A stretch of DNA of 64,000 bases from Octopus sinensis (GCF_006345805.1 NC_043014.1:44144001-44208000); one strand, 5' to 3'; shown: positions 2,426 through 59,496, counted from the first letter of the stretch. Numbers and translations are program-made. Notes: generated from the sequence alone by a model not told the origin.

Positions 2426-3682
2426 ATGGCATCCAATCAGCAAGAGAACGATACGTACGTAGAATTGGTAGCGTATTTGGAAGAACAGAACGGTACACAC
2501 GAAGCATTAATGGTGTGTCCGGATGAAACTAGCCTTTTAGACGACGATGAGTGCGAATCAGCAACGGCGGATTCGGAAGAAAATAGCGACATATTCGAAT
2601 TGTTGATGGAAGATTCGGTAGAAGAGACCCACACATACGAAACAGTAATGGCAGATTCGGAAGAAAAGAGCGTTTTAGACGACGATGTCTGCGAATCAGC
2701 AACGGCGGATTTGGGAAAAAAGAGCCTTTTAGACAGTGAAGTATACGAACCATCAAATGCGGATTCGGAAGAAAATAGCCACATATACGGATCGTTGATG
2801 GTAGATTCGGTAGAAAAGACCCATACATATGAAACAGTAATGGCAAATTCGGAAGAAGAGAGTCATACCTACGAAAACTTAAGGGTGGATTCGAAAGAAG
2901 AGAGCCATACCTACGAAAAATTAAGGGCGGATTCGGAAGGAGAGAGCCATACCTACGAAGAAATAATGCCGGATTCGGAAGGAGATAGCCATATCTACGA
3001 AGAAATAATGCCGGATTCGGAAGGAGATAGCCATATCTACGAAACATTAAGGGCGGATTCAGAAGGAGAGAGCCTTTCCCTCGAAATAATAACTGATTCG
3101 GAAAAAACGGAAGAAACAGATGGCAATAATTCTGTAGACGATTCGACAAATGTTCCGATACTAACCACAGAAGAATCAAGGACAACACGTCGTTTGTCAC
3201 ATTCTTCTACTTCTAGCAACGCGGAAAACGAAGAAACGACCGCACTCGGACGATTTGGGCAACATCAAAATCAACATCACACGACCATCTCTTTTGATAT
3301 GCACTGGCTGTTTATACTTGCTTGTCTGGTGTCGAGTTCAGTCAATTTATCCTGCAGTTTTACATATCTGTTGCTACTGCTTCGCAAATATTCAATTGCA
3401 TCAGATTATTGGAGTGTTGTTCTGAACACGATTACGTTATTCAGCTCGTCCATAATCTTCTGCATCTTTTCCCCAATTTGGAAGCGAAAGTTAGTTTTTC
3501 CGAATAGAACTATCGGCTACAGTCTCATATATACGACCCTCAATCTCGTGTCTGCTGTCATTATCATCAATTTACGTTACACTCGGATCACCCTCGCCAT
3601 TTTTATAAGCAGTATCTTGCTGTCTGTCCTGTTATTTGTACAGAGAATCAGATTAAGATTTACAGCTTTAGAAAACCTGTAA
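2426..3682 (+). CDS. Tetraspan family paralogue G1 (418 aa): long acidic N-tail with 14-aa Tyr repeats, four C-terminal TM helices
   Basis: ATG-to-stop ORF. Four hydrophobic segments with the family motifs HWLFIL..SLSCS, WKRK..FPNR and LNLVSAVII. RRLS motif precedes TM1. Confidence 0.85.
   Translation: MASNQQENDTYVELVAYLEEQNGTHEALMVCPDETSLLDDDECESATADSEENSDIFELLMEDSVEETHTYETVMADSEEKSVLDDDVCESATADLGKKSLLDSEVYEPSNADSEENSHIYGSLMVDSVEKTHTYETVMANSEEESHTYENLRVDSKEESHTYEKLRADSEGESHTYEEIMPDSEGDSHIYEEIMPDSEGDSHIYETLRADSEGESLSLEIITDSEKTEETDGNNSVDDSTNVPILTTEESRTTRRLSHSSTSSNAENEETTALGRFGQHQNQHHTTISFDMHWLFILACLVSSSVNLSCSFTYLLLLLRKYSIASDYWSVVLNTITLFSSSIIFCIFSPIWKRKLVFPNRTIGYSLIYTTLNLVSAVIIINLRYTRITLAIFISSILLSVLLFVQRIRLRFTALENL
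2560..3100 (+). repeat. Coding 42-bp (14-aa) tandem repeat in G1
   Basis: Units such as GCGGATTCGGAAGGAGAGAGCCATACCTACGAAGAAATAATG. The Tyr codons at 2786 and 3038 are exactly 6x42 bp apart. Confidence 0.9.
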
Positions 3683-3844
3683 CCAACTTCAACTTTCTAT
3701 TTTCAATCATTCTTGTTTTATATTATCTTTCCGCGTAGTTTGTTTTAACTCTTGAACATTTCACTTGGTGTTTTTTTAAACAGGATTGTAGACAAAATGT
3801 AACCAAACATTATAAATACTGTGACTATGCTGTTGGAGTTTAAT

Positions 3845-4250
3845 ATTCTTTCAGTTGTACTTTCAGTAGTTTTAACCCCTTTTCAATAGTTTTAACCCTT
3901 TTTCAATAGTTTTAACCCTTTTTTCAATAGTCTTAACCCTTTTGAGGAGTTTTAACTCTTTTCAAGAGTTTTAACCCTTTTCAATAGTTTTAACCCTTTT
4001 CAATAGTTTTAACCCCTTTCAGTAGTTTTAACCCCTTTCAGTAGTTTTAACCCCTTTCAGTAGTTTTAACCCCTTTCAGTAGTTTTAACCCTTTTCAATA
4101 GTTTTAACCCTTTTGAGTAGTTTTAACCCTTTTGATTAGTTTTAACCCTTTTTGAGTCGTTTTAACCCCTTTCAGTAGTTTTAACCTTTTTGAGTAGTTT
4201 TAACCCTTTTTCAATAGTTTTAACCTTTTTGAGTAGTTTTAACCCTTTCA
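3845..4250. repeat. ~20-bp minisatellite (AGTAGTTTTAACCCCTTTC-like), about 20 units
   Basis: Direct reading of tandem units. Confidence 0.9.
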
Positions 4251-4879
4251 ACAATCATACTCTGGATATGTATGTAGAATTTCAAACAGAAAGATGAGCA
4301 TAATTTTATTGCTAATAATAATAATAATAATAATCCATGTTACGTTATTGAATTTTATACCCCGAACTTGAACAGAAAACCTGCCGCATTTCCCATGATG
4401 CCAGACCTACTTTTGCGTTTGATACTTGTAATGCCTACCACACAAATGAATACCCGTATATATTTCGATCTACTGCATTGCCATATAAAGAACCACACGA
4501 AAATATTTGCTCAAAACCTCGTGATTACCGTTTCTTAGCAGTTTTTTTACTGACGCAGGTTTCGGTTAATCACTTCATGTGCTTTATATAATGAGAGAGC
4601 GGGAGACAACTCTACGTATTATCAATTATTAAGGTCTTTACCGCGTACGTTTGCATTATAACAACAGTTATAAATCTGATTCCTTTTGACATCTAACATC
4701 AATTTCTGTCATTAAAGATTTCTAATCGCATGTAATTTTTCGTAAATTTCCAACGCTATTACAATCCCAAGACTAACTTTTAAGAAGACCGCTCAGAATG
4801 CAAGCCTCCACCAAGGCAACACTGAAGTCTTATTAGCCAGAGATGATTTTTAAGATGAGAATATCTGAAACAAACTCGA

Positions 4880-5125
4880 CTGCTTTCACAAACGAGATTA
4901 CTAAAAATGAACCCGACCGCCCTCAAAATTTAAGTAAAAAAAGAAAAAATGAAAAAATAATCCAGAATCCTTGTCCGGTTCCGGATAGATCCCAAAATCT
5001 AATTAGTTCGTGCCAGTCCTTGAAATTTCCGAATCCATCCCGCGGTTGAGATATCTTGTCCACCGACAAACAAACAAATGCGACTGAAAACAATACCCCC
5101 GCCTTAGCGAAGGCGGAGATAGTAA
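4880..5125 (+). mobile_element. Possible non-autonomous Helitron/Helentron-like element
   Basis: Ends in a GC hairpin (CCGCC-TTAGCGAA-GGCGG) followed by AGATAG, preceded by an (AAAC)n run. Resemblance only. Confidence 0.35.
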
Positions 5126-5378
5126 GTACTGATACAACATCATCAATTAGAATGATCAATATGCAGGAAATGTTGCTGACTAAAGAATAAAATATGAAGT
5201 AGTTAATTGTTTAACCCCTTACCCAACAATTATTTTGAAAATAAATGTATTTTTTCAAACATATTTTTTAATTGTTTTATTTTACTATGTTTTGAATGGT
5301 GATTTCGAGGTATATTTCAAACCTTATTTATTATGAATTTTAATTCAATAATATTGATTTTAAATTACCGCTTTGGGC

Positions 5379-5704
5379 TTAAAGACTCCGCCGGTTACGA
5401 CGACGAGGGTCCCAGCTGATACTATCAACGGAACAGCTTGCTCGTGAAATTAACGTGCAAATGGCTGAGCATTCCACAGACACGTGTACCCTTAACGTAG
5501 TTCTCGGGGATAATCAGCGTGACAAAGAGAGTGACAAGGCCGGCCCTTTGAAATACAAGTACAACTCATTTTTGCCAGCTGAGTGGACTGGAGCAACGTG
5601 AAATAAAGTGTCTTGCTCAAGGACACAACGCGTCGCCGGGAATCGAACTCACAACCTTACGATCATGAGCCGAATGCCCTAACCACTAAGCCACGCGCCC
5701 TCAC
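5379..5704 (-). mobile_element. tRNA-derived SINE, family B (V-domain-like body)
   Basis: tRNA-like head on the minus strand and a GTGTCCTTGAGCAAGACAC body. Flanked by the 12-bp TSD ACCGCTTTGGGC. Confidence 0.8.
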
Positions 5705-5973
5705 ACCGCTTTGGGCAGAAACGAGTTAACCCGTTTTTAGACGAAGGAACTCGTTTGCTGTCGATTTTGGCGAGTCTATCTTTTGACGAGTTAACTCACC
5801 AGAGATAGAAAAAAAAGGGTTTCGGTCAAAACGCATATATTCGTTTCTGTCGGGTAAGGGGTTAAACCGATTTCACAAACGGAAAACAATTTTTTTTTTT
5901 ACTTTCCATTGTTTCATAGATAATACAGTGGAGACATATAAAGGAACTAGCAGACGGTATTTCTGATGGAGAA

Positions 5974-6391
5974 TAAGGCGGTGAGCTGGCAGAACCGTTA
6001 GTACGCCGGACGAAATGCTTTGCGGTATTTCGTCCGCCGCTACGTTCTGAGTTCAAATTCCGCCGAGGTCGACTTTGCCATTCATCCTTTCGGGGTCGAT
6101 AAATTAAGTACCAGTTACGCACTGGGGTCGATGTAATCGACTTAATACTTATGCCTGTCTTTGTTTGTTCACTCTGTATTTAGCCCCTTGCGGGTAATAA
6201 AGAAATAGGTATTTCGTCTGCCGTTACGTTCTGAGTTCAAATTCCGCCGAGGTCGACTTTGCCATTCATCCTTTCGGGGTCGATAAATTAAGTACCAGTT
6301 ACGCACAGGGGTCGATGTAATCGACTTAATACCTATGCCTGTCCTTGTTTGTCCACTCTATGTTTAGCCTCTTGTGGGTAATAAAGAAATA
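5974..6391 (+). mobile_element. SINE family A with a duplicated body
   Basis: tRNA-like head, GCCTTTCATCCTTTCGGGGTCGATAAA core and GTGGGTAATAAAGAAATA tail. 18-bp TSD GGTATTTCTGATGGAGAA. Confidence 0.85.
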
Positions 6392-6660
6392 GGTATTTCT
6401 GATGGAGAAAACTTTTCTTATTAGTTGGCTTCGTATCTGCACAGGTAATGATTTCGTCAGAAATGAAAAAAATAATAAATGATTGTGGGAACTTAGAGAA
6501 ACTCGTAGCTTCACGAATAATCTAAATATTTTCAATTTGCTACGAACATCGAATAATTTTAGGTTAAAACCTTTTCTGGATTCTATATATTGTCCAGAAG
6601 AATGATACATATAGACATTATCGAACAAAGGATCTCGATGTCAGCACTACCTCAAATATC

Positions 6661-7536
6661 CATTTCTTTATTACCCACAAGGGGCTAAACATAGAGGGGA
6701 CAAACAAAGACAGACATAGGTATTAAGTCGATTATATCGACCCCAGTGCGTAACTGGTACTTATTTAATCGACCCCGAAAGGATGAAAGGCAAAGTCGAC
6801 CTCGGCGGAATTTGAACTCACAATGTAACGGCAGACGAAATACCACTAAGCATTTCGCCCGGTGTGCTAACGATTCTGCCAGCTCGCCGCCCCTCTCTAC
6901 CTCAAATATCACGGCCATCTCTTCACTAGCACTTACTATAACACGGTTGCTGGCAGAAACGTTAGCACGCCGGGCGAAATGCTTAGCGGTATTTCGTCTG
7001 CCGTTACGTTCTGAGTTCAAATTCCGCCGAGGTCGACTTTGCCTTTCATCCCCTCGGGGTCGATAAATAAAGTACCAGTTACGCACTGGGGTCGATGTAA
7101 TCGACTTAATACCTATGTCTGTCCTTGTTTGTCCTCTCTGTGTTTAGCTCCTTGTGGGTAATAAAGAAATTGGTATTTCGTCTGCCGTTACGTTGTGAGT
7201 TCGAATTCCGCCGAGGTCGATTTTGCCTTTCATCCTTTCGGGGTCGATAAATAAAGTACCAGTTACGAACTGGGGTCGATGTAATCGACTTAATACCTAT
7301 GTCTGTCCTTGTTTGTCCCCTGTGTTTAGCCCCTTGTGGGTAATAAAGAAATTGGTATTTCGTCTGCCGTTACGTTGTGAGTTCGAATTCTGTGAGGTCG
7401 ATTTTGCCTTTCATCCTTTCGGGGTCGATAAATAAAGTACCAGTTACGAACTGGGGTCGATGTAATCGACTTAATACCTATGTCTGTCCTTGTTTGTCCC
7501 CTCTGTATTTAGCCCCTTGTGGGTAATAAAGAAATA
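6661..7536. mobile_element. SINE family A cluster: one minus copy (6661-6895) and one plus copy with three tandem bodies (6950-7536)
   Basis: Same core and tail. The minus copy is flanked by the TSD CTACCTCAAATATC. Confidence 0.85.
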
Positions 7537-7934
7537 GGTTGCTAACTCGATGTTTCTTCTGTATAATATTCCCGTTTATGAAATGATTATCACTTTCTTA
7601 ACTCGATCACTCATCCAATGTATCTTGTCAGATTTATTTAAACTCTTAACCGCTACTTTATCTTCGGTTTCCAATAAAGTTTCCAATAACTTGTTTCTTA
7701 CTTTTGGTTCTTTCTTGTGTACCGAGGTTGACATCGAATTTTACACTTCAAATTTTGTAACCAACTTCAAATCTCCACTCTCGGGCAACCCAGTTATATT
7801 TTTCGATGTAGTTCAACTTCTAATATTTTATTTTAAAATATAGTGAAATCGGGTGGGGGTGGAATAAACGAATGTTACTATTTCAAATACCCTGGATACG
7901 TTGTCACGTATAAGAAAAAAAAATCCGAAGCAGT

Positions 7935-8130: not shown

Positions 8131-8282
8131 AAGCCACAAGGGTCAAACACAGAGGAGACATACACACATGCGGGGACAAACAACACATGAAAAATGAATG
8201 AAAAACGGCTATCTCGGCCCCGCTCCGAGATGAAACCATGATTCCCCCCATCCTTTTTTTTTAGCTTTACTGTTTAACCAAA

Positions 8283-8465
8283 AAAGATTTTACATATTCT
8301 TTATTGCCCACAAGGGGTGAAACATAGAGGGGACAAACAAGGACAGACAAAGGGATTAAGTCGATTACATCGACCCCAGTACGTAACTGGTACTTATTTA
8401 ATCGACCCCGGAAGAATGAAAGGCAAAGTCGGCCTCGGCGAAATTTGAACTCAGAACGTAACAGC
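8283..8465 (-). mobile_element. SINE family A, partial
   Basis: Core and tail match the other family A copies. Confidence 0.8.
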
Positions 8466-10320
8466 AGCCCGGCAAGAAAGTCCTCGAGGGCTCTCCCACC
8501 ACCAGGAACGCCGTCATCCCCCGAACAGCTGGGCGGAGTACTCCCGAAAGGCCTCACACATTTTCTGGCCAGCGGAGACCACACCCGTTCACTATGTAGG
8601 AGAATCCAGAGGTGCCTCAACCTCAACGCATGTCTGCGCATTATTAACCAAGGCAGCCCTAAACCTCCCTTTAAAGTCTTTTGACAGCAGACAGAGCGTT
8701 TCACAAGTGGCAACCTGCCCTTCCACAAAAAGCAAAAGAGCTGTCTCTCCAGCCTGATCAACCACGAATCCGGACAGGGCACGACGGTTAGGCGGTAGGT
8801 AATGACCGATGCGATAAACACATTGGCCACCTCCTCCCTCCCTTTCAGGGATAGCCACCGCTAAGACCAGGTATTGACAACTGCAGCCACCCTGCTCAAT
8901 ACCTCCGTCCAATTTTTCTCTCTCTGGAGGCCTGGTCCAAACCAAACTCCCAGCAACTTAACCGGTCCCTCCATCCAGCGCCCAATAACGCTGTCTGAAG
9001 GCATCGATTTGCCAACCCAGGTGCCGAGCTACAAGCCGACCGACTTTTCCCGGTTGATCTTTGCTCCGGCCACCTCCTCGTAAGCCTCAATAGTCTTACC
9101 CACTTCACGTAGGCGTGCTACCGAGGTTACGCTGATAGTGATATCATCCGCGTAAGCCGTAACAAACTCCTCTAGACCTGGTTCTCTCGGGATGCTACTC
9201 AACTTTCGCAGTAGCGGCTCGAGAGCCATTACATACAGAAGTGGTGAAAGCGGACATCCTTGACGAACCGAGCGTCTGATGCAGAACGGCTTCGAAAGGA
9301 AACCGTTCACCCGAACTATCGAGTCAATGTTGTGGTACGAAGCCATAAACCACCTGAGGAAGCCAAGGCCCAGGCTGAACCGCGCAAGCACAGTCGCCAG
9401 GTATCGATGGTCAACCATATCAAAAGCTTTAGACTGATCTAAATGTACCAATGCCCCACCTTTGCCAGATTTATTACCAACCCTCTCTATGGTATAGCGA
9501 ATAAGATGGAGGGTATACTGAATGGTTCTGCCTGGGATGGCACATGTTTGTGCCTCCCCGACTATACCATTCACGACACGCGCCAACCTTTTTGCTAAGA
9601 CCTTGGCCAAAATCTTCACTTCTGCGATTAACAGAGTGATGGGCCTGAAATTCTCTATAACGTCTCTCTTGTCCGGGTCCTTTCTGACCAACGTCACTAC
9701 CCCCCGGCGCACAGATCTGGGGATAAGCCCATTCTGTTGCCAGTTCGCGTACACGTCAGCCAGTAGTTGCCCGAACAAGTCTGGCATACATTTATACAGC
9801 TCGTACAGAAGACCATCAAGTCCCGGTGACTTACCCGCTTTGCAGTCGGCCAAAGCCTCCATCACCTCCACAGACGTGATTGGCTCTTCGCAAAACTCCG
9901 CATCCGACTCCGAGAGACACGGCAGCCCAGCAAGAAAGTCCTCGAGGGCTCTCCCACCTCCAGGACCGCCGTCACCCCCAAACAGCTAGGCGAAGTACTC
10001 CCGAAAGGCCTCACACATTTTCTCGGATTCGTTTACTAAGACACCATTTTGATTCGCCAAAGATCGAATAGTGGAACTATTTCTTTGCCGAGCTTCCACC
10101 ACTCAAGCCCATCCAGCGGCCTTGATTCCTTCACTTCCCATTGCACATAACTTAGCTCTGGCAATACTTCCCATGTGTTGGGCTTCAAGATGCTGGTTTA
10201 ACTCCAGTCTTTTCACCCTCGTATGGTCCGCATTACCAGTCCTCCAGGCTTCTTCTAGTCCCTTAATTAGACCATCTTCTTTTCTACGTCCCTTCTTAGC
10301 TAAACTTATGCTAATGAGTC
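8465..10320 (-). mobile_element. L1/Tx1-like LINE ORF2 fragment (RT and flanks), rearranged
   Basis: RT motifs KSPGLDG, FRPITLL, LDQSKAFD, RQGCPLSPLLY and YADD. Post-RT segment WKGRLPLVKRSVC..GGLG. Confidence 0.9.
9029..9871 (-). pseudogene. Non-LTR reverse transcriptase domain (L1/Tx1-like)
   Basis: 280-aa open segment with canonical RT motifs including YADD. The flanking frames are disrupted. Confidence 0.9.
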
Positions 10321-10450
10321 AAAATATCAAACAAATAGCGGTTTGAACAGTAAAATAGAGTACCACAATATCAGTATGAGCGGCAAATAGTGTTCATATA
10401 TTTCTAATAGTATTTTGAAGCACAAATGAAATTTGATAATGTCACCTCTG

Positions 10451-10706
10451 GAATTGAAACCGCGCGTGGATTTAAATGATCTACCTGCAACATGTAATTG
10501 ACTAGGAGGGGAAAAAGTGAGGGTGGTTTGATGGAATAGTTTATTTAAGGTAATTTTTTTTTAAATCAACACAAAGTATTTTTTAAAATTTCTATTGTTT
10601 CCTAGACAATAAATATACAAAATGGCGAATTGTTAAGAATTCAAAGAGCGGAATTTTTTATGTTAGTTAAACTTCAAATCGGCAAAAGTTTACATCTCCA
10701 GAAAGA
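10451..10706 (+). promoter_or_regulatory. Conserved upstream block of the tetraspan family (G2 copy)
   Basis: GAATTGAAACCGC...TGCA(T/A)..GATGGAATAGTTTATTTAAGG...TTTCTATTGTTTC..AGACAATAAATA. It recurs before G3 (19457), G4 (23281), G5 (25046), G6 (32827), G8 (49005), G7 (45498, minus) and G9 (59778, minus). Function is inferred. Confidence 0.7.
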
Positions 10707-11321
10707 ATGGCGGATTCGGAATTAATGGAAAATCCTGAAAGAACTAATGGAGATAATGTGGATTATGTGAACAATGATCCAAGTAGGGGCAATTTAATAC
10801 AACCATCGAATCCTTCGAGGCCAACACGTCGTCAGTCACTTGCTTCCAGCGTTAGCAATGAGGAAAATATAGAAATGATCGCACTTGGAGCAGCTCGGCA
10901 ACCTGAACTCCGCGATCAACAGCAGAACCAGAGACACACTATTAATGATTTCACTATGCGCTGGAGCCATAAATTCATCTACCTGGTGTTATCATTTATT
11001 AGTTTATTCATCAGTATGATAGATCTGTTGAAAAGAACTCGCAATTTTTCAGCTGTGTTAGACTATTTGAATATTTTTCTCGACGTGGTTATAACAGCCA
11101 ACTCGTTGATAATTTTGTGTGTCGTCTTTCAATTTTTCAAGCGAAGAGCTGAGTTCACAAATCGCTCTGTCTTTGTATGTCTCCTATGTGCCGTATGTAA
11201 CCTGTTATCTGCCACAATTATGTACTACTTACACCATGAAGGGATGACCCTGGTCGTTCTTATCACCACTTTCATACTTTTGCTTCTGTTGTATGTACCA
11301 TGGTTGATGTCGCGTTTGTAA
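10707..11321 (+). CDS. Tetraspan family paralogue G2 (204 aa)
   Basis: MADSE start, RPTRRQSL..EENIEMIALG, four TM segments, KRR.EF.NR loop. Confidence 0.85.
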   Translation: MADSELMENPERTNGDNVDYVNNDPSRGNLIQPSNPSRPTRRQSLASSVSNEENIEMIALGAARQPELRDQQQNQRHTINDFTMRWSHKFIYLVLSFISLFISMIDLLKRTRNFSAVLDYLNIFLDVVITANSLIILCVVFQFFKRRAEFTNRSVFVCLLCAVCNLLSATIMYYLHHEGMTLVVLITTFILLLLLYVPWLMSRL

Positions 11322-12429
11322 TTATTCAAAATCTAGAATCAACTTCAACTGTATATTCAGTAATTCCTGTTTTTTTTTTAAATCATGTTTTAATGTAGTT
11401 AATTCGTTATAACATTTAAATATTTTAATTGCTTTTAAAAATAACTATAAACTTAAATAGAACCAGACACTTCGAAGAATTGACTATACTGTCGGAAAAA
11501 AACCATCTTTTGACATTCGTTTCTTTTCGGTCACTTGCGTTATTGAATTCCACTCTTACATTCAACGTATAACATTTTACATGATGTAGGACATGCTTGG
11601 GGTATGAAAGGCTAAAATAATTTCCATAAGACCAGATTCACATATAATGAATCCAACAATTTGCCCACCGCTACAATAATGGAAAAAAACTTTGCTGTAA
11701 ACACAAGGATTTCGGTCTCATGCCTACAATATCTCTTGTAATTCTTAACTTCCTACATCAACTTATTGCATCCGTTGCTCACATTCTGGATTGACACTCC
11801 GATACCCCTTACCTTCTTCCTGTATTTCTCCCCTCAAAATTCACCCATTGCAAAATTATCTTCTCTATTCATTATATTGGCCATAAAGGCCTTACATAAA
11901 AGGGAAGCAAAAATATTTTATGCGACCGCTGCCTCACTACAACACTAGCAAACTACACAGCTTTTTTAGTTCTTCGATCTTCTGCATTGCAATATAATCA
12001 TATGAAAAGATTCGTTCAAAACCTAGTAATTCCAGCTTTTCGGTGATGTGAAGATTTGCCTCGAAGTTCTTATCGATGCAGACTTTGACCAGTTACTTCA
12101 GAATAGCACACACATACACCGCTACACCTGCTCAATTAATGAGACAATTACAGTTAACATTTTGCTGTATGACTCCAAAGCTCTGATATTGATTTATTAT
12201 GACAACGACCATCTATTTCTTTTCTTTGTTCAAGGATTTTTAAGAGGATGTAATTTTCGTAAATTTCCAATGCTATTACAGTTCTAGATTAACTTTAAAT
12301 AAGTATTGGAACAGCATCAGGGTTTGCCCGCAAGAAATTGTATTTGACTAAAGAATGAAACCTGAACTATTTCATTGTTCTTGTTCAAATCGTTTTCAAA
12401 AATCCAAAACTAAATTAGCTTTTTTGTCT

Positions 12430-13130
12430 CTCTTCCATTTGTTTCTTCGATAATACAGTAGATAGGATAAAAATTAGTCAACATTGCTTCTGAAGGAGAT
12501 TTTTCTGTCACCTGGCATCATATCAGCAATAGTGATGATTTCATCAGAAATAACTGATTCCGTAGAGACTTATAGCTTCAAGAATATTTTAAGTATTTGC
12601 AATTTGCTACGAACATAGAATGGGTCCTAGTCGAAACTTCGGCCGTCGCCGGATCCCCAAACTTGTTCCAAAGAAGAATACAGAGATACGGCCGAACAAA
12701 GAGGATCCCAATATCCGAACCGTCTGCATACTACCGAATAGCCACCGCCAAGACCAGGTCTTGACTACTGCTGCCACCCTGCTCAATACCTCCGTCCAAT
12801 TCTTCTCTCTCTGGAGGCCTGGTCCAAACCAAACTCCTAGCAACTTAACCGGTCCCTCCATCCAGCGCCCAACAACGCTGTCTGAAGGCATCGACTTGTC
12901 AACCCAGGTGCCGAGCTACTGCTAACTCGATTTTCTGTATAATTTTCCCGTTTTTGAAACCATGATCGGTATACTCAACTCGATCTCACGTCCTCTGTAT
13001 TGTGTGTGATTTATTTAAACTGTTGTCCGTTACTCTTACATCTTCGGTTTACAATAAGAATAAATAATAGTAACCTTGTGTGTACCGAGGTCTATGATGA
13101 CTTCTGCATTCTTCAACTGTCTATACTCAA
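12430..13130 (+). pseudogene. Degenerate tetraspan paralogue interrupted by a LINE fragment
   Basis: Homologous to 5880-7790. GCTAACTCGATTTTCTGTATAATTTTCCCG (TM2) and TGTACCGAGG (C-terminus) are recognisable but frameshifted. Confidence 0.6.
12616..12920 (-). mobile_element. L1/Tx1-like LINE ORF2 fragment
   Basis: Near-identical to 8840-9030 (GPVKLLGVWFGPGLQREKNW). Confidence 0.85.
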
Positions 13131-13326
13131 TCATTAGAGTTTTATTTTCGATGTAGCTCAACTTTTAATATATATTTCTTAAATATTGAAGAACAAACAA
13201 CTAAAATGTAACTAAATATTTTAAATACCCTGGCTACATTGCCAAACGCAAATCAGTCAGCAATGTCAATTTTTTTTTCTTAACTCGTAATTTGTTAACC
13301 CTGTTGCCATTTTATACTGGGAGCTT

Positions 13327-15200: not shown

Positions 15201-15239
15201 GATCACATAAAATCAAATAGAATTTTCCCTATAAAAACA

Positions 15240-15480
15240 TTTTACATAACATGCCATAATGCTTCAGGACCAGTTACTGCAACAGCCTGGGTTTCAAGGG
15301 CCCACAGCTTTTTAATATTCTCCCAAAGAGTCTGAGGAACTTGCACAAAGTAGATGTAGGGGTTTTTAAATCAAAGCCGGACCTCTTCCAGTCGAGAGTC
15401 CTAGATGAACCTACCTCACGGCAAGAGGTGCAAATGAGGGTAGCTATATCAAACTCCATTCTTCACCAAGTGCCACATAT
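15240..15480 (+). mobile_element. CR1/L2-like LINE 3' fragment
   Basis: Translates PKSLRNLHKVDVGVFKSKPDLF..VLDEP..SNSILHQ, resembling the C-terminus of CR1-group ORF2. Confidence 0.5.
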
Positions 15481-15529
15481 TGGAGGAGGCTCTTAGTAAT
15501 AACAGTGTAGCAAAACGGCGGTGCATCGG

Positions 15530-34420: not shown

Positions 34421-34455
34421 CATTCTCCCCCCCCGCCACCAGTGTGGGTTTTATC

Positions 34456-49254: not shown

Positions 49255-50196
49255 ATGTCCCAAGAAATAATGGAGGGTTCAGAAAGAATAGAAGACTTTG
49301 AAAGAACAGATGATTCCGAAAGACTAGACGGTTCTGAACGGCTAGAAGGCGCTGAACGGCTGGAAGGTGCTGAACGGCTAGAAGACGCTGAGCGACTGGA
49401 AGGCGCTGAGCGACTGGAAGGCGCTGAGCGGCTGGAAGGCGGTGAACGGCTAGAAGGCGGTGAACGGCTAGAAGGCGGTGAACGGCTAGAAGGCGGTGAA
49501 CGGTTAGAAGACGCTGAACGGTTAGAAGACGCTGAACGGTTAGAAGACGCTGAACGGCTAGAAGGCGCTGAACTACTAGATTATTATGAAAGAATGGGAT
49601 ATTTTGGAACAATGGTGGATTCTGAAACAACTGATGGAGATGACCCTATGGATATTTTGAGCTTTGATCCAACTCGGAACCATATAATAATATACCCAGG
49701 GGATAGGAGGCCAATACGTCGTTCGTCATTTTCTTCCTATCTCGGTAGTGAGGAAAACATAGAAATGACTGCGCCAGGAGAATCTCCACAAAACCAACAA
49801 CAAAATAACAAGTATTCTAATCTCCACTGGCTCTATATAGTCGGTTATTTAGTGTTGGGTTTGGTCTGTCTATCCTGTGGCATTGTATATCTGTTGCAAA
49901 TCGTTCGCAATTTTAAAAATATGACTGAGATTTGGAGTTTTATTCTCGACATAGTTATATTGTGCAACTCGTTGGCAATCCTCTTCATTGTTTTCCCGGC
50001 TTCCAAGCGAAGAACGGTTTTCCCAAATCGCTCTCTTGTCCACTGTCTCCTATGTACTTTATTCAACCTGGTGTCTTCAACCATAATCTTCTATTATCAT
50101 TACGATTGGATAATGTCGGTTGTTCTTGTCAGTAGTATCATACTTTTGGTTCTGTTTACTCTACCGGGCACAAGATCGAATTTTACAGTGCTTTAA
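49255..50196 (+). CDS. Tetraspan family paralogue G8 (313 aa from the first ATG; frame open from 49231) with ERLEG(A/G) hexapeptide repeats
   Basis: RPIRRSSF..EENIEMTAPG, LHWLYIV, CNSLAIL, KRRTVFPNRSLVHCLLCTLFNLVSSTII. Confidence 0.85.
   Translation: MSQEIMEGSERIEDFERTDDSERLDGSERLEGAERLEGAERLEDAERLEGAERLEGAERLEGGERLEGGERLEGGERLEGGERLEDAERLEDAERLEDAERLEGAELLDYYERMGYFGTMVDSETTDGDDPMDILSFDPTRNHIIIYPGDRRPIRRSSFSSYLGSEENIEMTAPGESPQNQQQNNKYSNLHWLYIVGYLVLGLVCLSCGIVYLLQIVRNFKNMTEIWSFILDIVILCNSLAILFIVFPASKRRTVFPNRSLVHCLLCTLFNLVSSTIIFYYHYDWIMSVVLVSSIILLVLFTLPGTRSNFTVL
49300..49575 (+). repeat. Coding 18-bp tandem repeat (about 15 units) in G8
   Basis: GAACGGCTAGAAGGCGCT-type units. Confidence 0.92.
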
Positions 50197-50829: not shown

Positions 50830-51780
50830 GCAGTTGAACTTTGAATAGAAAACGAGTCGGATTCGAACGTCTTGCATGCAAGCAACTGTGATTGACTACA
50901 GAAAGAAAAGTGAAGAATAGTTCGTTTAAGACGATAATTTTTTCTTCTTATAAATTACAAAAACAAGGAAACCAATTGTCTCCCTACTACAAAACATGGT
51001 TAAATGTTGAAGTGGAGAAAGTTTTTCATTTCGTTTAAAGTATATAAGGAAGATAATTTCCTCAGAAATAACAAACGATTATGTTGGAGCTTATACTCCA
51101 ACGAAGTACATTAACATTGCAAGTACCAGATCTTTTCAGTTTGAACGGCAGTTTTTTTCTAGAGGTGTCATATGAAATTGTCACCCATAATTATGACCCT
51201 AGTATCGATCTATTGCATTTCAATCTGTTTTAGGGTTAGGGGTGGGGGAAGGGTATCCTTTTTTCTTCAGAAATGTAAATAAACCCAATCTGTTTCTTAC
51301 ACGAGGGACATATTCATACGGCACAGAATGTTTTTTTTTTTTACCTCAATAGACGTCACTGATTGGTAGAAATTGAAGAAGAAAAAACTACAAATATCTT
51401 ACAAACTATAGAATTTTCTCAATAAAGCCAAGAGAAAAAGATGTTTTATAAACACATTCTACCAGTATACGAAGTTTAAAATTTTTTAGTTACGAGGAAA
51501 TTGTTAAAAACTGCCGTTCAAACCGAAAAGATCCGAGAAAGTTTTTCATTTCGTTTAAAGTATATAAGGAAGATAATTTCCTCAGAAATAACAAACGATT
51601 ATGTTGGAGCTTATACCCCAACGAAGTACATTAACATATTGCAAGTACCTACATTTCACTAAAAACCTTGAATGATTTTATGTCCATACTATTCTCTTAA
51701 TCGTACTCTACCTTGTGGCAAGCGAGCTCAAACTAGTGATCGGGGCTATGCTGCAAGAGCAACGTTACTTCCCAAACTAT
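50830..51780 (+). pseudogene. Type-II remnant, interrupted by a MITE and a 113-bp duplication
   Basis: Degenerate upstream block (TGCATGCAAGC..GATTGAC..GAATAGTTCGTTTAAG) and the body motif CTCTTAATCGTACTCTACCTTGTGGCAAGCGAGCTC..GGCTATGCTGC. Confidence 0.55.
51128..51534. mobile_element. Merlin-type MITE flanked by a ~113-bp direct duplication
   Basis: TIRs present; 51015-51127 is repeated at 51535-51649. Confidence 0.85.
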
Positions 51781-53969: not shown

Positions 53970-55560
53970 TTATTACTACCCACAAGGGGCGAACATAGAG
54001 GGGACAATACAATCGAGGAACTTAAAATAAGAAAGCGAAATGACAAGAAAAGGAAAAAAATAAAAGTAAAAAATGACATATGAAAGAATATTTACAATGA
54101 GATGTAAATGCCCACTCGATCCCCGAAATCGAGAGGTTACATTTTCGTCACATATATTTCACAATATTTTCTTTTTTCTCTTCTTTCTTCTCTCTCTTCT
54201 CACAATTTTATACGTATTCCATAATACCTTTCAAGTCTCTAAAGTCAATCACTGAGCCCTCAGGCAGCCGCTCTTTCATTCGAACACCCGTGTAAAAAAT
54301 TACACTCTCTCCGGCAGCTCTGAGGAACTCAGCGACTCTTTCTTCGGGGATCAGAGCAGTCTCCTGCCACTGATCAGTCATCCTGTTGACCCACACATGT
54401 CCCTCCGTACTACATGTCAATTCCTTCATTTCAGGGCTGAAATGGAAGGTTATTAACTTGTAGTAATCTTGTTTCCGTCCTACGTTTTCCCTCGTTTTTC
54501 TTTTCGGGCTTATTTCTTCCTTGTTCTCCTCTCTTTGTTTCTCTCTTTCTCTCTTTTTGCTTTCTTTTCTTTCTTCTTCCTTCTCTTGTTTTTTTCCTGT
54601 TGTTTCTTTTTCCTTTTTCTTTTCCTGACTCTGTTTTGGTTCTATTTCTTTCTTTTCTTTTATTTCTTTTTCTTTCGTTGACTTATTATTTCCTTTCTCT
54701 TGTTGTTTTGTCTCCTTTTCTATGTTTTCTTTTTCATTTACCGTATTCTTCCTTTCTTCAAGTTCCTGCTCGTACTCCGCTATGAATTCGTATAGCGGGC
54801 ACTCTTTTTTAATGTGCCCCCTTGTCCCGCACAAGTAGCAGTTTGGCTTTCTTCCCTCTGCAATTACACTGAGGGTTTTCTCGTCTTCGATTTCTATTCT
54901 GTAGGGGAACCTTTCAATGTCTCTTTTGTGGCCATCAAACACAGTTCTACCCCATATCCTCTCCAGTTTACTGCGTTGGACTCCTTAAAGGATTCCACCT
55001 CCACTTCCTCTTCTGCTGCTCCAGAATAGCTGTTGCCAGCCACTCTGTTTTTATTTCTGGGGGTATATTCGGGATTTTAACCCGGACCCTCTTCTTCCCT
55101 TGTATGAGGGCCACATTGTAAAATTTTCGGCTCTTAGTACAGTGGAAGCCAGTGAGGCTGCAATTTCTTCCGTTGCACATCTCACCTCCACCGTACCAAA
55201 TTTCTTGCCTCTACTCACATAGGTCGATTTTTGCATTATGTCTCCCAGACATTTTTCAATTTCGGCTATCTCCACTCTAGCCAGCTTCTTCGTATTTTTG
55301 TCTTGGGTTCTATACGTCACTGTCTTGCTTTCCTTGTCCTCTTTTGCTTTCGCGGGGGGGATTAGCTTCACGCTATCACCCTCCCTTCTGAAGAGCTTTT
55401 CATATTCTTTGAGTTTACTCTTCTCAAAGAAAACATCCTTCACGATTATCGACGAATCATTTTTTTTTCCCGTGACCCCCGCGTAAGTCGCCATGACTAG
55501 AGGGTCAATTCACCTTCTTCGGAAGGTTTCCACACGTAGAGGCAAACGCCTCGCGCGATA
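53970..55560 (-). mobile_element. ORF1-only element, diverged subfamily C, frameshifted
   Basis: Three overlapping frames (55051-55494, 54968-55180, 54208-54942) rebuild an ORF1 with TYAGV, RGKKFGTVEV, RVKIPNIPP and CYLCGTRGHIKKECP. A ~240-bp UTR and the GCCCCTTGTGGGTAGTAATAA tail follow. Confidence 0.75.
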
Positions 55561-57149: not shown

Positions 57150-57610
57150 GAGACTAGATGGGACGACGTTGCCTTTGCTGCATAGCTCTGATCACTGACT
57201 GAAGCTCTCTTACCACAAGATGGAGTACTATTAAGAGAGTGATTGTCACAAATCATTCAATGCTCTTAGTAAGATGTAGGTACTTGTATTTTTGTTGATA
57301 TACGTCCCAGGGTCATTTCTAACAGTTCTTACAGAATCGTCTCTTATTTCTAAAGATTTTTTTTTCTCTCGGATTTCAAATGCAAAGTACATGAAAAAAT
57401 TTGTCTCAACGTTTGACCAGGGTTTTGTATTTATTCGGAAGAAACAATAGGGTGTGGGGTTAAACTGATTTCCTTTATTTTCAATGAAAATTAATCATCT
57501 TAATTGAATTGTTTCGTAGTTTCTACTTTACACATTTTTCTTTCTCCAGTCGGTCTTGCATGCAGGACATTCGAATTCACAACGTGGTTTCAATTTTTAG
57601 TGTGGAAACA
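57150..57610 (-). pseudogene. Type-II remnant
   Basis: The minus strand has AAAATTGAAACCACG..CTGCATGCAAG, GACGATTCTGTAAGAACTG and CTCTTAATAGTACTCCATCTTGTGGTAAGAGAGCTT. Confidence 0.6.
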
Positions 57611-57689
57611 AAAATAAAAATTTCACAAATGGTTCTAATGCCCTTGGAAATTATGAACACTATCGTTCCAGAAAGTAATGTCCATTCAA

Positions 57690-58100
57690 AGTATCATTAC
57701 AAGGTGTTTTGAGATTATCAGAGCAAAATTTCTTGATGTCAGACGTAAAGCGCTTCGACGACGCCGTGGTGATCTCATTCTTGCTCACAACATCATAAGC
57801 GGAAAGTGTAACCTCTCGAAAGAGCTGTTCTTCACTCCTGCTCCAGAGCGTCGGCTGCGGGGTCATTCTGAAAAGCTCTATCTGCGACGATTTCATCTCA
57901 ATCGAAGGAGAGGGGCTTTCTCCGTCCGGGTTGCGGAACCGTGGAATAAGCTGCTGGACGAGATAGTGAAGATGCCGACGACCGCTCGGTTCAAAGTCTC
58001 CCTTGACCACAAATGGCCTGAACTCTTTGCATGAACACCCTCCCTGTACATAACTCCATGTCCCCCTACAAGGCCTTACTTTTTGCTTTTTGAGCCAAAA
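57690..58100 (+). mobile_element. CR1/Jockey-group LINE 3' end
   Basis: RRRRGDLI..RGHSEKL..RRGAFSVRVAEPWNKL motif set. Confidence 0.8.
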
Positions 58101-58399
58101 AATTAACTAACTAACTAACATTTGCAGATAAAACCTTGTGCTGCCGTGAGCGATCTGAAGAAATGAGTGATAGTTTGCATCGGTAAAAATGATTTTGGAG
58201 GGTCTACCTGTAGTACGAAGACAGGAATTCGGACGGTTCGAACAAGGAATTCTTCCATCTCTGTATAATGTTGGTTCTTGGGGTTTATTAGATTGGTTAC
58301 AGGTGGATTTGGATTCTGGGTTTTGTGTGGTAGGCATTTCTTACTTTATGCGAAGTGTTACCGATTTCCTGTGAAATTCAGGACGTAAAAATTCACGTC

Positions 58400-58700
58400 G
58401 CTGTATGGTAAGAAGTTCGCTTCTCGACCACTTGGTCCCGGGTTCAGTCCCACGACGTGACATCTTGGGAAAGTGTCTACTATAATCTCGGGCCGACCAA
58501 AACCTCGTGAATGGATTTGGTAGACGGAAACTGAAAGAAGCCCGTAGTGTGTGTCACCACCGCTTGACGACTAGAGTCGATCTGTTTACGCATCCGTAAC
58601 TTAGCGGTTCGGCTAAAGAGACCGTTGGAATAAGTACTAGGCTTTAAAAATAAGTATAATGTGGTGCTCCAGAATGAGCGCAGTCTAATGACTGAATCAA
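58400..58700 (+). mobile_element. SINE family C, diverged
   Basis: Head, GGATTTGGTAGACGGAAACTGAAAGAAGCC body and tail. Confidence 0.75.
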
Positions 58701-58902
58701 GTAAAATATAATGTAGAGAAGATATTACAATTATTGAAAAATTAAAATTAAATCTCTAATACTCCTCTGTAATTAAAATTTTAAGTTGCATTTTATCTGC
58801 AATTATGTTTTTAAAGCAATAAAAATATTTAAAAGTTATAGCCATCTACATTGAAAAGTACTAAAAAGAAGCGTGAACGATTGCATGTAGAAAGGGGCGA
58901 AG

Positions 58903-59496
58903 TTACGAAACTTGGACAGCTAAAAAATTCGATATCAACCTCGGTATACACAACAGGATCAAAAGCATGATACTAATGATAAGGACGGCGATTGTAATCC
59001 AGTCATTCCGCAAACCGAAAACGATGGAAGCCGACACCAGATTACAAAAGGTACAGAAGAGACACAAGACGAGTCGGCGATTTGGTAAAATTGCTCTGCG
59101 TCTGGAAAACGGGATAACGATGCAGAAGATTATCAGCGAACAGACGCCTATAACCAGGTCTAAAGCGACACTCAGATACGAAAATATGTCATCTGGAACG
59201 TGGTGGAATACTTTCAGTATATGTACGATGCTGCAAGATAAACTCAACACAGACAACACCAGGTAATTAAGCAGATAGAACCAGTGAGTCCCGATAATGG
59301 TATTTCGCTGTGGGTTCGGATCTTGATCGTTGTGTTGACCTCTTAACGCCGTCATTTCTATGTTTTCCTCATTGTTGATGAATGACAGACGACGTGGCCT
59401 CTCATTCGCTGTTGGTGATAAATTGTTCACGCTTGGTTCACTGTTCAAATTCTCCATTGGGTTATTTTCTTCAGAATCGTTTCTCTCAAGAGACAT
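58903..59496 (-). CDS. Tetraspan family paralogue G9 (197 aa from MSLERNDSE)
   Basis: RPRRLSF..EENIEMTALRG, THWFYLL..LSLSCSI, RRRAILPNRRL, FCNLVSASIV. The start was chosen by alignment to the paralogues. Confidence 0.83.
   Translation of the reverse strand: MSLERNDSEENNPMENLNSEPSVNNLSPTANERPRRLSFINNEENIEMTALRGQHNDQDPNPQRNTIIGTHWFYLLNYLVLSVLSLSCSIVHILKVFHHVPDDIFSYLSVALDLVIGVCSLIIFCIVIPFSRRRAILPNRRLVLCLFCTFCNLVSASIVFGLRNDWITIAVLIISIMLLILLCIPRLISNFLAVQVS

Follow-up and report, generated by a model that had tools for sequence, protein, structure and literature searches.

A tandem array of orphan four-transmembrane protein genes in octopods

An array of nine intact genes

A 64-kb stretch of the Octopus sinensis genome, referred to as the window, contains one family of four-transmembrane (four-TM) proteins: nine of its genes, each with a single exon, are intact, and seven further copies have decayed. 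We conclude with high confidence that the genes, each self-contained and with one coding exon, form a tandem array and belong to an orphan family, so far detected solely in Octopoda (Octopus spp. and Argonauta). The family, of which the literature searched makes no mention, is previously undescribed, and this array of membrane-protein genes is selectively maintained and almost entirely unannotated.

The original prediction of nine intact paralogues was borne out: there are nine uninterrupted ORFs, and a profile of the conserved module (~175 residues), run against the six-frame translation, matches 9/9 of them with E values of 7e-66 to 1e-87. The first gene, par1 (2426–3682, plus strand), starts with MASNQQ and encodes 418 residues, including a long, acidic tail in which a 42-nt (14-residue) repeat, present 6.5 times, bears HTYE[EK][IL]-type motifs. 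It is followed on the same strand by par2 (10707–11321, 204 residues), the orthologue of O. bimaculoides XP_014789313.1; par3 (19724–20344, 206 residues), the O. vulgaris counterpart of which is also intact; par4 (23525–24142, 205 residues), with ω = 0.06 relative to O. vulgaris; par5 (25357–25992, 211 residues); and par6 (33063–33647, 194 residues). Situated 0.9 kb behind par4, par5 forms with it the sole intact–intact doublet in the array. The first 66 codons of par6 are wrongly fused to a retroelement exon in O. vulgaris model CAI9737836.1. On the minus strand, par7 (42959–44071) encodes 370 residues from its true ATG, the listed ORF beginning at an upstream TTG; its tail contains a 51-nt (17-residue) repeat in six copies with YLDM, YLVV, and YINM, a 21-nt repeat in five copies, and poly-Q, and NIYEEI lies near the N terminus. 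The plus-strand gene par8 (49255–50196) encodes 313 residues from its first ATG; its MASN codon is a TTG (listed TTG start, 49231), and its tail has an 18-nt (ERLEGA) repeat in 13 copies. The last gene, par9 (58903–59496, minus strand), encodes 197 residues from its true ATG at 59496, the position at which the array was originally said to end.

As predicted, the nine paralogues share four hydrophobic segments and the motifs HW, LSCS, W..LD..NSL..C, KRR..FPNR, and CL.C..FNL.SA, and they are strongly diverged, with pairwise identities of 32–62%. Synteny with Octopus vulgaris OX597833.1, at ~94–97% identity, marks the window as belonging to a very close relative of that species. The array is far beyond chance: long ORFs are unexpected in DNA of this composition (62% A+T), and those of the family are intact in O. 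vulgaris and show an excess of synonymous changes.

Promoters, flanks, and decayed copies

Every gene has its own conserved promoter/5′-UTR of ~300 bp and about 100 to 400 bp of conserved 3′ flank, which includes an A[AT]TAAA-like signal. The par2 promoter/5′-UTR block (10428–10706, plus strand) contains GAATTGAAACCGC..., ATGGAATAGTTTATTTAAGG, and a TAAATAC box ~75 bp upstream of the ATG, and equivalent blocks sit upstream of all paralogues. Inside the par7 promoter lies a gag-like CCHC retroelement (44157–45388, minus strand) that does not belong to the family. This site is empty in O. vulgaris; the insertion disrupts the promoter, the distal half of which is displaced to 45389–45517 (minus strand).

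At least seven remnants had been predicted, and seven were recovered when the entire unit was used as a DNA profile; protein-level searches show only two or three. Remnant A (5886–7828, plus strand; behind par1) consists of pieces at 5886–5927, 6396–6558, and 7541–7828, which correspond to the promoter, the 5′ CDS, and TM3–TM4 plus 3′ flank. Remnant B (12297–13273, plus strand; behind par2) is a decayed, near-complete copy with an orthologue in O. bimaculoides (L005, 11378–12044). Remnant D (21425–21630, plus strand; behind par3) retains the promoter and the first ~40 codons (MADSEITDGQSLVS*), and an orthologous piece is present in O. bimaculoides (L005, 6383–6651). It is 74% identical to remnant C (34173–35671, plus strand; behind par6), which is split into pieces at 34173–34333, 34650–34702, and 35514–35671. 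Promoter and 5′ CDS are left in remnants F (41645–42268, minus strand; behind par7) and H (57240–57601, minus strand; behind par9), and remnant G (50836–51044, plus strand; behind par8) is a piece with the promoter only. An eighth candidate (27218–27340) was rejected, being the 3′ end of a retroelement.

The remnants form a lineage of their own, and each lies behind an intact gene, which suggests that the unit of duplication is a doublet of a gene plus its trailing copy. At least remnants B and D are older than the Octopus species split. For most paralogues, a 1:1 counterpart exists in O. bimaculoides and other octopods; the paralogues are mostly old, rather than products of species-specific bursts. 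The birth-and-death evolution originally proposed tells only part of this history.

Selection, taxonomic spread, and annotation

The dead copies lose their reading frames fast, which gives a picture of neutrality at the array, in contrast to the intact ORFs. Three species, O. vulgaris, O. bimaculoides, and O. sinensis, retain intact family ORFs, and homologues occur in Argonauta. All five comparable O. vulgaris orthologues (5/5) are intact and under purifying selection; over these five pairs, pN/pS is 0.17 for the TM core and 0.40 for the tail, and the overall synonymous excess has a binomial p of 1.4e-5. Values of ω are 0.17–0.40 relative to O. vulgaris and 0.30–0.65 at greater distance (core, between Octopus species), and no orthologue comparison, near or far, gave ω > 1. 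Relative to O. vulgaris, the window shows in-frame differences in repeat number, with the Tyr motifs retained. Evolution is fast yet constrained, the long-range ω of 0.3 to 0.65 amounting to weak constraint overall.

When 1.84 billion proteins were searched exhaustively with a profile, 23 clusters only were returned, and the named ones all come from Octopus or Argonauta and are labeled “uncharacterized” or “hypothetical,” in agreement with the proposed lineage specificity. Correctly modeled copies in the stretches examined number 0/5 in O. vulgaris, 1/5 in O. bimaculoides, and 1/2 in O. sinensis. Since the copies are mostly unannotated, standard gene catalogues, orthology tables, and single-cell atlases miss the family.

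This scarcity of annotation, the absence of all nine window proteins (0/9) from a 15-billion-protein collection, the retroelements interleaved across the array, and the fact that transcript evidence was not found would fit non-functional ORFs, either carried by a repeat element or remaining from one, or due to chance. That explanation is scarcely credible and already largely refuted by the synonymous excess in five independent orthologue pairs, the intact ORFs in three Octopus species with homologues in Argonauta, the homology boundaries, which are neither sharp nor TE-like, and the rapid loss of frames in the dead copies.

Structure and topology of the membrane core

The conserved C-terminal module of par5 (residues 34–211) was modeled with AF2. 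The model is a plain four-helix bundle with a pLDDT of 81.9 overall and >90 in the four helices (residues 37–80, 86–113, 120–144, and 147–177), which are connected by loops of 5, 6, and 2 residues. The TM3–TM4 loop, which has two residues in the model, spans four alignment positions (H-Y-D/E-W). As had been proposed, signal peptides are absent, the N termini being acidic and hydrophilic, and the positive-inside rule places both termini and the TM2–TM3 loop in the cytosol: mean K+R counts are 1.8, 3.9, and 1.7 for the predicted cytosolic segments versus 1.8 and 0.4 for the outward loops. N-x-S/T sequons occur in the TM1–TM2 loop of five of the nine window copies. Conserved polar and Cys positions comprise C-S in TM1, L-D...S in TM2, and C-x-x-C...N in TM3, the CxxC being located where TM3 begins on the cytosolic side (C126 in 21/31 members and C129 in 25/31).

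Of the checks that had been recommended for the TM module, structure modeling was confident, and Pfam and Foldseek gave no match to a known family. When the nine full-length proteins were scanned against Pfam with hmmscan (E ≤ 1), there was no match to CD20, MARVEL, SCAMP, Mtp/LAPTM, Ndfip, tetraspanin, or claudin-type families, and in a Pfam scan of 31 members no family matched more than two. A search of the complete set of PDB sequences with the family profile (E ≤ 10) retrieved presenilin and KCNT1 noise alone, and no CD20 chains. Foldseek found nothing in the PDB at E ≤ 0.001 (best E 0.3, TM-scores about 0.3–0.5) and no match among viral structures; the top 50 PDB matches comprise fragments of GPCRs and four-helix bundles of soluble proteins, and CD20 is absent from them. 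No MARVEL protein is among the PDB matches listed. Membership of MS4A/CD20 or MARVEL, to neither of which the family could originally be assigned, is thus supported by none of the sequence and fold searches run (Pfam, PDB sequences, and Foldseek against PDB and viral structures).

The bundles might oligomerize, as is thought or known for Orai, CD20/MS4A, and TMEM176, into a pore-forming or channel-regulating subunit, in which the TM2 Asp, TM2 Ser, and TM3 Asn would line an ion path and a phosphorylatable tail would control gating or trafficking. Polar residues are indeed conserved inside the TM helices (D94 and S101 each in 22/31 members and N133 in 18/31), purifying selection is strongest on the TM core, and tiny outward loops like these are also seen in some small channel subunits. 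We consider such a subunit unlikely, however, given the lack of structural likeness to PDB channel subunits in the Foldseek search, the absence of Pfam and PDB sequence signal, and a core ω between Octopus species that is high for a selectivity-determining pore.

The cytosolic tail and possible functions

The N-tail is disordered and cytosolic; it is about 35 to 290 residues long, acidic (net charge down to −65), and 10–30% Ser/Thr. It contains, on the cytosolic side, P-x-R-R-x-S followed by EENIEM, a block still recognizable in the most distant Argonauta members. With a mean pairwise identity of 46%, versus 26–32% for the outward loops, this is the most conserved segment outside the membrane. 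Strict RRxS is found in 5/9 window paralogues and 20/36 family proteins censused, and behind the site lies an acidic block of the CK2-like form S-x-x-E. Tails have grown by tandem repeats that multiply YEEI/YxxM-type motifs. The YxxΦ motifs number nine in par1 and seven in par7, with one in every repeat unit, and include YEEI, YLDM, and YINM; none of the remaining seven window copies has more than one, so that Tyr-motif arrays occur in 2/9. PPxY is present just in Argonauta P0014 and P0016 and in 0/9 window proteins.

These features bear on the original suggestion of a chemosensory or immune receptor or an adaptor. A diversifying receptor family for external ligands would be compatible with the tandem array, the dead copies, the fast protein evolution, and a TM1–TM2 outward loop that, at 26% identity, is among the least conserved segments, and there is a superficial parallel with MS4A chemosensors. 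Nevertheless, the receptor idea did not hold up and is very improbable: predicted outward sequence totals ≤ ~16 residues with helix ends (~5 + 2 in the modeled loops), which leaves no ectodomain for ligand binding; the conserved block and all diversification in length and repeats are located in the cytosolic N-tail; and the paralogues are mostly old, with 1:1 orthologues and ω never above 1. Of the two suggestions, the adaptor fits better.

Our tentative interpretation is that these are tetraspan adaptor or scaffold proteins, a possible rather than a probable role. The four-helix bundle would be a putative membrane anchor or intramembrane association module, and the TM3 C-x-x-C, located at the cytosolic membrane boundary, a typical palmitoylation position, would be a candidate for this modification; juxtamembrane CxxC is palmitoylated in LAT/PAG-type adaptors. 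The N-tail would be the working part, acting as a regulated docking platform with a family-wide basophilic-kinase-type site (P-x-R-R-x-S; RRxS is a PKA-type kinase site), a Ser-rich/acidic E-E-N-I-E-M block, and paralogue-specific short linear motifs added by tandem-repeat amplification. Among these additions, YEEI/YETV belong to par1 and YLDM/YINM to par7; two Argonauta members have PPxY, and the acidic repeats of par8 lack Tyr. Phosphorylated YEEI is the optimal ligand of Src-family SH2 domains, pYxxM binds PI3K p85, and PPxY binds WW domains; different paralogues could thus recruit different cytosolic partners (SH2, WW, and kinase/14-3-3-type) to one kind of membrane site. Functionally, such proteins would resemble transmembrane adaptors and the tetraspan FcεRI β subunit (MS4A2), without homology. 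The adaptor reading must be weighed against the restriction of Tyr arrays and strict RRxS to 2/9 and 5/9 copies, the ease with which short linear motifs arise by chance in acidic repeats, the stronger constraint on the TM core than on the tail, the weak overall constraint indicated by the long-range ω, and the conserved intramembrane Asp/Asn, which would also suit an ion path.

YxxΦ is equally an AP-2 sorting signal, and the same tails could belong to a vesicle or endolysosomal trafficking tetraspan resembling MARVEL, SCAMP, or LAPTM/Ndfip proteins, with a core that shapes or marks membranes and a tail carrying sorting signals (YxxΦ–AP, acidic clusters, and PPxY for Nedd4-type ligases). The N-in/C-in four-TM layout with short loops is shared with these proteins, the tails contain YxxΦ, acidic clusters, and the CK2-like block behind RRxS, and PPxY occurs in the two Argonauta proteins. 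We nonetheless regard this role as improbable, since the MARVEL, SCAMP, Mtp/LAPTM, and Ndfip profiles are unmatched in the nine proteins at E ≤ 1, no Pfam family matches more than two of 31 members, and the window copies lack PPxY altogether.

Extending the adaptor reading to the family as a whole, a more doubtful proposal, one may envisage an octopod-specific class of tetraspan adaptors that combines a palmitoylatable anchor and an RRxS/acidic block with tails gaining SH2-, PI3K-, and WW-type specificities by repeat amplification, that is, a signaling toolkit grown by gene-doublet duplication and possibly tied to sucker, skin, or neural cell types. Of the many clade-restricted tandem arrays known from cephalopod genomes, few have been characterized beyond reflectins, suckerins, and expanded receptor and protocadherin families. 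If the adaptor reading is true, new signaling scaffolds arose from a minimal membrane anchor and repeat-amplified short linear motifs, and octopods have a concrete, testable set of such genes. If it is false, what remains is an orphan family that is well delimited and confidently modeled, of value to genome annotation and to work on the origin and diversification of orphan membrane proteins.

Comparison with known families

MS4A/CD20 proteins (PF04103) are small four-TM proteins with cytosolic termini, encoded by diverged paralogues in tandem gene clusters, and at least one of them, MS4A2, is a signaling adaptor that acts via a Tyr motif in a cytosolic tail. The octopod family is similar in having four TM segments, predicted cytosolic termini, a tandem cluster, and diverged paralogues. 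It differs in that its TM3–TM4 outward loop has two to four residues, whereas that of MS4A proteins is sizeable, in carrying its signaling-type motifs in a long N-tail, and in being octopod-restricted. With MARVEL proteins (PF01284; MAL, synaptophysin, occludin, and CMTM), it shares the M-shaped four-TM topology, cytosolic termini, and short loops; to our knowledge, the TM2 Asp, the TM3 CxxC...N signature, and the RRxS–EENIEM tail block are not features of MARVEL. Tetraspanins (PF00335) have a large EC2, CCG, and disulfides, whereas the octopod outward loops have ~5 and 2 residues and CCG is absent. Likewise, the long first loop of claudin/PMP22/EMP proteins, with its W-GLW-C-C signature, contrasts with a TM1–TM2 loop region of ≤12 positions that lacks this signature.

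Transmembrane adaptors (LAT, PAG/Cbp, NTAL, and LIME), a functional class, resemble the octopod proteins in their negligible ectodomain and in a CxxC where the membrane meets the cytosol; their disordered tail with arrays of Tyr-based docking motifs is paralleled by the candidate motifs of par1 and par7. They are not homologous, having a single TM segment rather than four, and in the octopod family Tyr arrays are confined to some paralogues. Adaptors of the Ndfip/LAPTM type differ in their PPxY motifs, which are missing from all nine window proteins.

At the genomic level, cephalopods are known to contain clade-specific, tight tandem arrays without similarity to known proteins, including reflectins, suckerins, and unnamed arrays (PMC9068888). 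Those arrays were described in the squid D. pealeii, where their products are structural proteins or are left unspecified, whereas the octopod array encodes a four-TM family; like them, this family is taxonomically restricted, tightly arrayed in tandem, and unlike known proteins.

Organization of the array

The window is eukaryotic and A+T-rich (G+C 34–44%), with abundant retroelement fragments and microsatellites. It contains nine intact ORFs, referred to here as par1 to par9, which lie on the forward strand (par1, 2426–3682; par2, 10707–11321; par3, 19724–20344; par4, 23525–24142; par5, 25357–25992; par6, 33063–33647; par8, 49255–50196) and on the reverse strand (par7, 42959–44071; par9, 58903–59496). 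The starts of three of the nine ORFs were reset to the first ATG agreeing with the conserved start region of the family. In a six-frame translation of the window, all nine ORFs match a profile of the C-terminal ~175 residues with E values from 7e-66 to 1e-87, and pairwise identity among the nine proteins is 32–62%.

Decayed copies were located with a DNA profile of the whole unit, comprising 300 bp upstream, the CDS, and 300 bp downstream. This profile reveals seven remnants, whereas searches at the protein level reveal just two to three. The remnants are A (5886–7828), B (12297–13273), C (34173–35671), D (21425–21630), and G (50836–51044) on the forward strand, and F (41645–42268) and H (57240–57601) on the reverse strand, and their reading frames are disrupted a few codons past the start. 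One further candidate, E (27218–27340), was rejected since it reflected retroelement sequence in the upstream part of the profile and disappeared when a clean unit profile was used. The original prediction of nine intact paralogues and at least seven remnants is thus matched, all of the motifs that it named are present, and its structural description was right.

Conserved sequence extends over ~250–320 bp upstream of each paralogue and includes a TAAATAC box ~75 bp 5′ of the ATG. On the 3′ side, ~100–400 bp are conserved, with an A[AT]TAAA-like element ~120 bp past the stop. Given these conserved flanks, each copy has the look of a complete gene unit of its own, with one coding exon. Transcription is predicted to begin ~30 bp past the TAAATAC box, and poly(A) to follow ~120–150 nt beyond the stop. 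The possibility that the gene unit is a mobile element or transposon was ruled out, since homology between copies has no sharp shared ends and dwindles at variable points (approximately −270 to −360 upstream and +100 to +400 downstream).

The long forms, par1 and par7, begin with the codons ATG-GCx-TCx-AAT-CxG (MASNxQ). The bases homologous to this ATG read TTG in par8 (49231), where the ATG is at 49255, and in the short forms (par2–par6 and par9) the MASNxQ-homologous bases are 5′UTR and the start follows ~45 nt later, at M-[AE]-[DNG]-S-E. The family has thus seen turnover of its start codon. Some leaders carry a minimal upstream ATG, for example, ATG-TAA directly 5′ of the par1 start.

Several repeats are interspersed with the genes. 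The same gag-like CCHC retroelement has inserted, in the sense direction, into the par1 promoter (123–2389, +) and the par7 promoter (44157–45388, −), and a consensus splice donor (AAG|GTAAGT) is found at the 3′ end of the element. Its two tandem copies at par1 stop 37 bp short of the ATG. Octopus vulgaris lacks the insertion at par7, which splits the promoter and leaves the distal half at 45389–45517. An interspersed repeat of ~430 bp is present at 13327–13740, 13953–14363, 14576–14983, 18758–19198, 32391–32812, 36896–37287, 51129–51534, and 60459–60885. Its copies are 86–94% identical, three of them are in tandem at 13.3–15.0 kb, and the SINE- or MITE-like element is also abundant in O. sinensis and O. 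vulgaris loci. The repeat was considered as part of the gene unit and rejected, since copies turn up at unrelated sites and face either way. Non-LTR retrotransposon debris lies at 8267–9871 (−), 40169–40603 (+), 54208–55494 (−), and 47667–48176 (+). It consists of an RVT_1 reverse-transcriptase fragment, a weak, sub-threshold zf-RVT match (E 0.009 against the Pfam cut-off), another CCHC ORF1-like pair, and one ORF with a 183-bp tandem duplication.

History of the array

A neighbor-joining tree of the cores recovers the cross-species pairs par1/bim2/P0007, par2/P0004, par6/P0001, par8/P0002, and par7/bim4, and places most Argonauta sequences in separate, deep lineages. Since most paralogues pair across species, most duplications are older than the split of the Octopus species compared. 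O. bimaculoides has colinear counterparts of remnants B and D, so that these two are old as well.

All seven remnants share the strand of an intact gene and lie 0.5–2.2 kb 3′ of it (par1 followed by A, par2 by B, par3 by D, par6 by C, par7 by F, par8 by G, and par9 by H). The sole other adjacent pair, par4 followed by par5, is similarly spaced (0.9 kb), and both of its members are intact. In a tree of the 5′ region (347 columns; a single, unbootstrapped tree), six of the seven remnants, that is, all except G, cluster with the O. bimaculoides counterpart of D and apart from the leading genes. Identities in this region are 74% between remnants C and D, 51% between D and par3, and 70% between par3 and par6. 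The trailing position of the remnants and their clustering apart from the leaders suggest that the array grew by duplication of a two-copy module, whose trailing member would already have been distinct and has mostly died. Birth-and-death evolution, as originally proposed, is a fair label for this array in the sense of old, mostly stable paralogues accompanied by an old, dead trailing class, but not in the sense of rapid, species-specific turnover.

Distribution among octopods

None of the exact sequences of the nine proteins is on record in a collection of 15 billion proteins. When 1.84 billion cluster representatives were searched exhaustively with a HMMER profile, only 23 clusters were returned at E ≤ 1e-3. 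The named ones are O. bimaculoides XP_014789313.1 (“uncharacterized protein LOC106882980”), O. sinensis XP_036366638.1 (“uncharacterized protein LOC118766890”), O. vulgaris CAI9737836.1, and 16 Argonauta hians clusters named “hypothetical protein Ahia01_...”, several with consecutive locus tags; all others are short contigs assembled from sequencing runs. Word-indexed searches, whether with par5, with the full alignment, or with a TM-only alignment, gave nothing or two Argonauta proteins only, and their candidate lists were swamped by low-complexity tails.

At the genome level, O. vulgaris OX597833.1:55614401–55641470 is colinear with window positions 18410–45897 at ~94–97% identity, which marks the window as DNA of a species very close to O. 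vulgaris. An O. bimaculoides array holds five intact copies and a remnant in 20.7 kb, with one of the five intact copies annotated. A second O. sinensis locus, outside the window, contains two intact copies, one of which has a gene model, and a frameshifted copy (5228–5745 of that locus). Argonauta has four tandem copies in one A. hians locus and at least three clusters on separate contigs. The O. vulgaris protein CAI9737836.1 (positions 10001–17070 of the O. vulgaris locus) is a chimeric model in which a retroelement exon is fused to par6 sequence, from the 5′ leader through codon 66, and splicing then leads out of the par6 CDS to a tiny terminal exon; the true ORF of 194 aa is intact and unannotated. 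Being chimeric, this model has little bearing on whether par6 is a real gene.

No match outside the octopods appeared in the profile search of the 1.84 billion representatives, absence from other annotated proteomes being weak evidence since these genes are badly annotated even in Octopus. The lineage restriction originally proposed agrees with the named clusters, which come only from Octopus and Argonauta, and the family is, so far, restricted to octopods.

Selection and transcription

All five comparable O. vulgaris orthologues (of par3–par7) are intact. Pooled over par3–par7, the comparison with O. vulgaris gave 26.5 differences of each kind, at 769 synonymous sites on the one hand and 2717 non-synonymous sites on the other (binomial p = 1.4e-5). 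The corresponding pN/pS values are 0.17 for the TM core (p = 9e-5) and 0.40 for the tail (p = 0.015). Against more distant octopods (dS 0.34–0.90), core omega is 0.30–0.65; dN/dS at the level of paralogues is uninformative because dS is 0.5–1.3, near saturation. These substitution patterns indicate that the proteins are constrained, yet quick-evolving for membrane cores. The selection data largely refute the reading of the copies as non-functional ORFs, which we regard as very improbable.

Direct evidence of transcription was not found in short public contigs. Logan contigs from SRR11869384/85/91 were considered as transcripts and set aside as they look genomic: they stay colinear with genomic sequence into both the promoter and the 3′ flank, start in a microsatellite, and have no poly(A). 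No mention of these three run accessions was found in the literature searched.

Predicted structure and membrane topology

An AlphaFold2 model of the par5 module, based on an alignment of 31 sequences, has a mean pLDDT of 81.9 and a pTM of 0.66; it replaced an earlier model from the nine sequences only (pLDDT 56). The model contains four helices with pLDDT >90 (residues 37–80, 86–113, 120–144, and 147–177 of the module), connected by loops of 5, 6, and 2 residues; confidence is low for the 40 residues at the N-terminus. As modeled, the fold is confident but generic and simple.

The N-termini are acidic and hydrophilic, from which it follows that a signal peptide is absent, as had been stated. 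Mean numbers of Lys plus Arg over the nine copies are 1.8 before TM1, 3.9 in the TM2–TM3 loop, and 1.7 after TM4, compared with 1.8 in the TM1–TM2 loop and 0.4 in the TM3–TM4 loop. This distribution supports the predicted cytosolic location of both termini. Among the nine window copies, five carry an N-x-S/T sequon in the TM1–TM2 loop.

Positions conserved in at least 55% of the 31 members include W54, C70, and S71 in TM1; Y88, L93, D94, I97, and S101 in TM2; K113 in the cytosolic loop; and C126-x-x-C129, N133, and A137 in TM3. Mean pairwise identity in Octopus is 42–43% for each TM helix, 26% and 32% for the two outward loops, and 26% for the C-tail.

Cytosolic tails and proposed function

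Ahead of the membrane lies a cytosolic block, (S)RPTRRLS-x-x-S-x-x-S-N-E-E-N-I-E-M-T, with 46% mean pairwise identity in Octopus; a P-x-R-R-x-S/acidic E-x-E-[ML] version of it can be discerned even in the most distant Argonauta members. Upstream of the RRxS block, tail sequence is hypervariable, rich in Ser/Thr, and acidic, with net charges down to −65, and it has expanded through tandem repeats that are unrelated between members. The par1 tail has 6.5 units of 14 aa, each with H-[TI]-Y-E-x-[ILV] and with three YEEI among them; the par7 tail has six units of 17 aa with YLDM/YLVV/YINM, in addition to 7-aa units and poly-Q; and the par8 tail has 13 ERLEGA units. DGDSPEDNL and GKNGN units occur in the tails of relatives, and PPxY motifs in two Argonauta members. 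Between the window and O. vulgaris, tail repeat number differs in frame and the Tyr motifs are kept. The par7 tail (43495–43967) and its O. vulgaris orthologue are set apart by changes in poly-Q and by clean indels, in frame, of a single 7-aa unit and a single 17-aa unit, which implies that tails evolve by repeat slippage.

At most ~16 residues face outward, which leaves the protein, as modeled, no ectodomain with which to bind ligands. Outside the membrane, the conserved element lies in the cytosol, as does all of the large-scale diversification. Both observations speak against the ligand receptor of the original prediction, which we consider improbable; a chemosensory or immune receptor is thus unsupported, and the adaptor, which had been named as the other option, is the better fit. 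We tentatively favor a scaffold or adaptor anchored in the membrane. In this reading, the four-helix core would serve as an anchor or intramembrane association module, and the boundary CxxC might be palmitoylated. The RRxS motif with its Ser/acidic run would form a phospho-regulatory block common to all members, and the paralogue-specific tails could offer differing docking motifs. A small channel or channel-regulating subunit, which would use the TM2 Asp and the TM3 Asn, is a less likely reading, and a trafficking tetraspan is unlikely to the same degree. The family is clean, under selection, and missed by annotation, and a scaffold or adaptor with such tails would make it a testable case of signaling-motif evolution through repeat amplification.

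Comparison with known families

The array represents a real orphan family of membrane proteins, not described before and mostly unannotated. Pfam gave no credible family match for the nine window proteins, and in a scan of the 31 members, no Pfam family was matched by more than two. Comparison of the family profile with all PDB sequences (E ≤ 10) returned nothing meaningful. Foldseek searches of the AlphaFold2 model against PDB and viral libraries gave no match at E ≤ 0.001, the best PDB E value being 0.3, from fragments of GPCRs and from soluble bundles of four helices (TM-scores 0.3–0.5). With no credible neighbor in Pfam, PDB sequences, or the Foldseek PDB and viral libraries, the family is, by these tests, not a recognizable member of MS4A/CD20, MARVEL, tetraspanin, or claudin. 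The earlier decision not to assign the TM module to MARVEL or MS4A was therefore sound, and the Pfam and AlphaFold/Foldseek checks of that module found no known family.

Octopus genomes contain many clade-specific families. Unnamed clade-specific arrays have been described for squid in a cephalopod genome paper (PMC9068888). No mention of the octopod four-TM family or of these loci was found in the literature searched. The family shares only the generic N-in/C-in four-TM layout with MARVEL proteins, and only that layout and tandem clustering with MS4A/CD20. The working proposed here would be similar to that of transmembrane adaptor proteins and of tetraspan subunits of the Fc-epsilon-RI beta type, although the octopod family is a member of neither.
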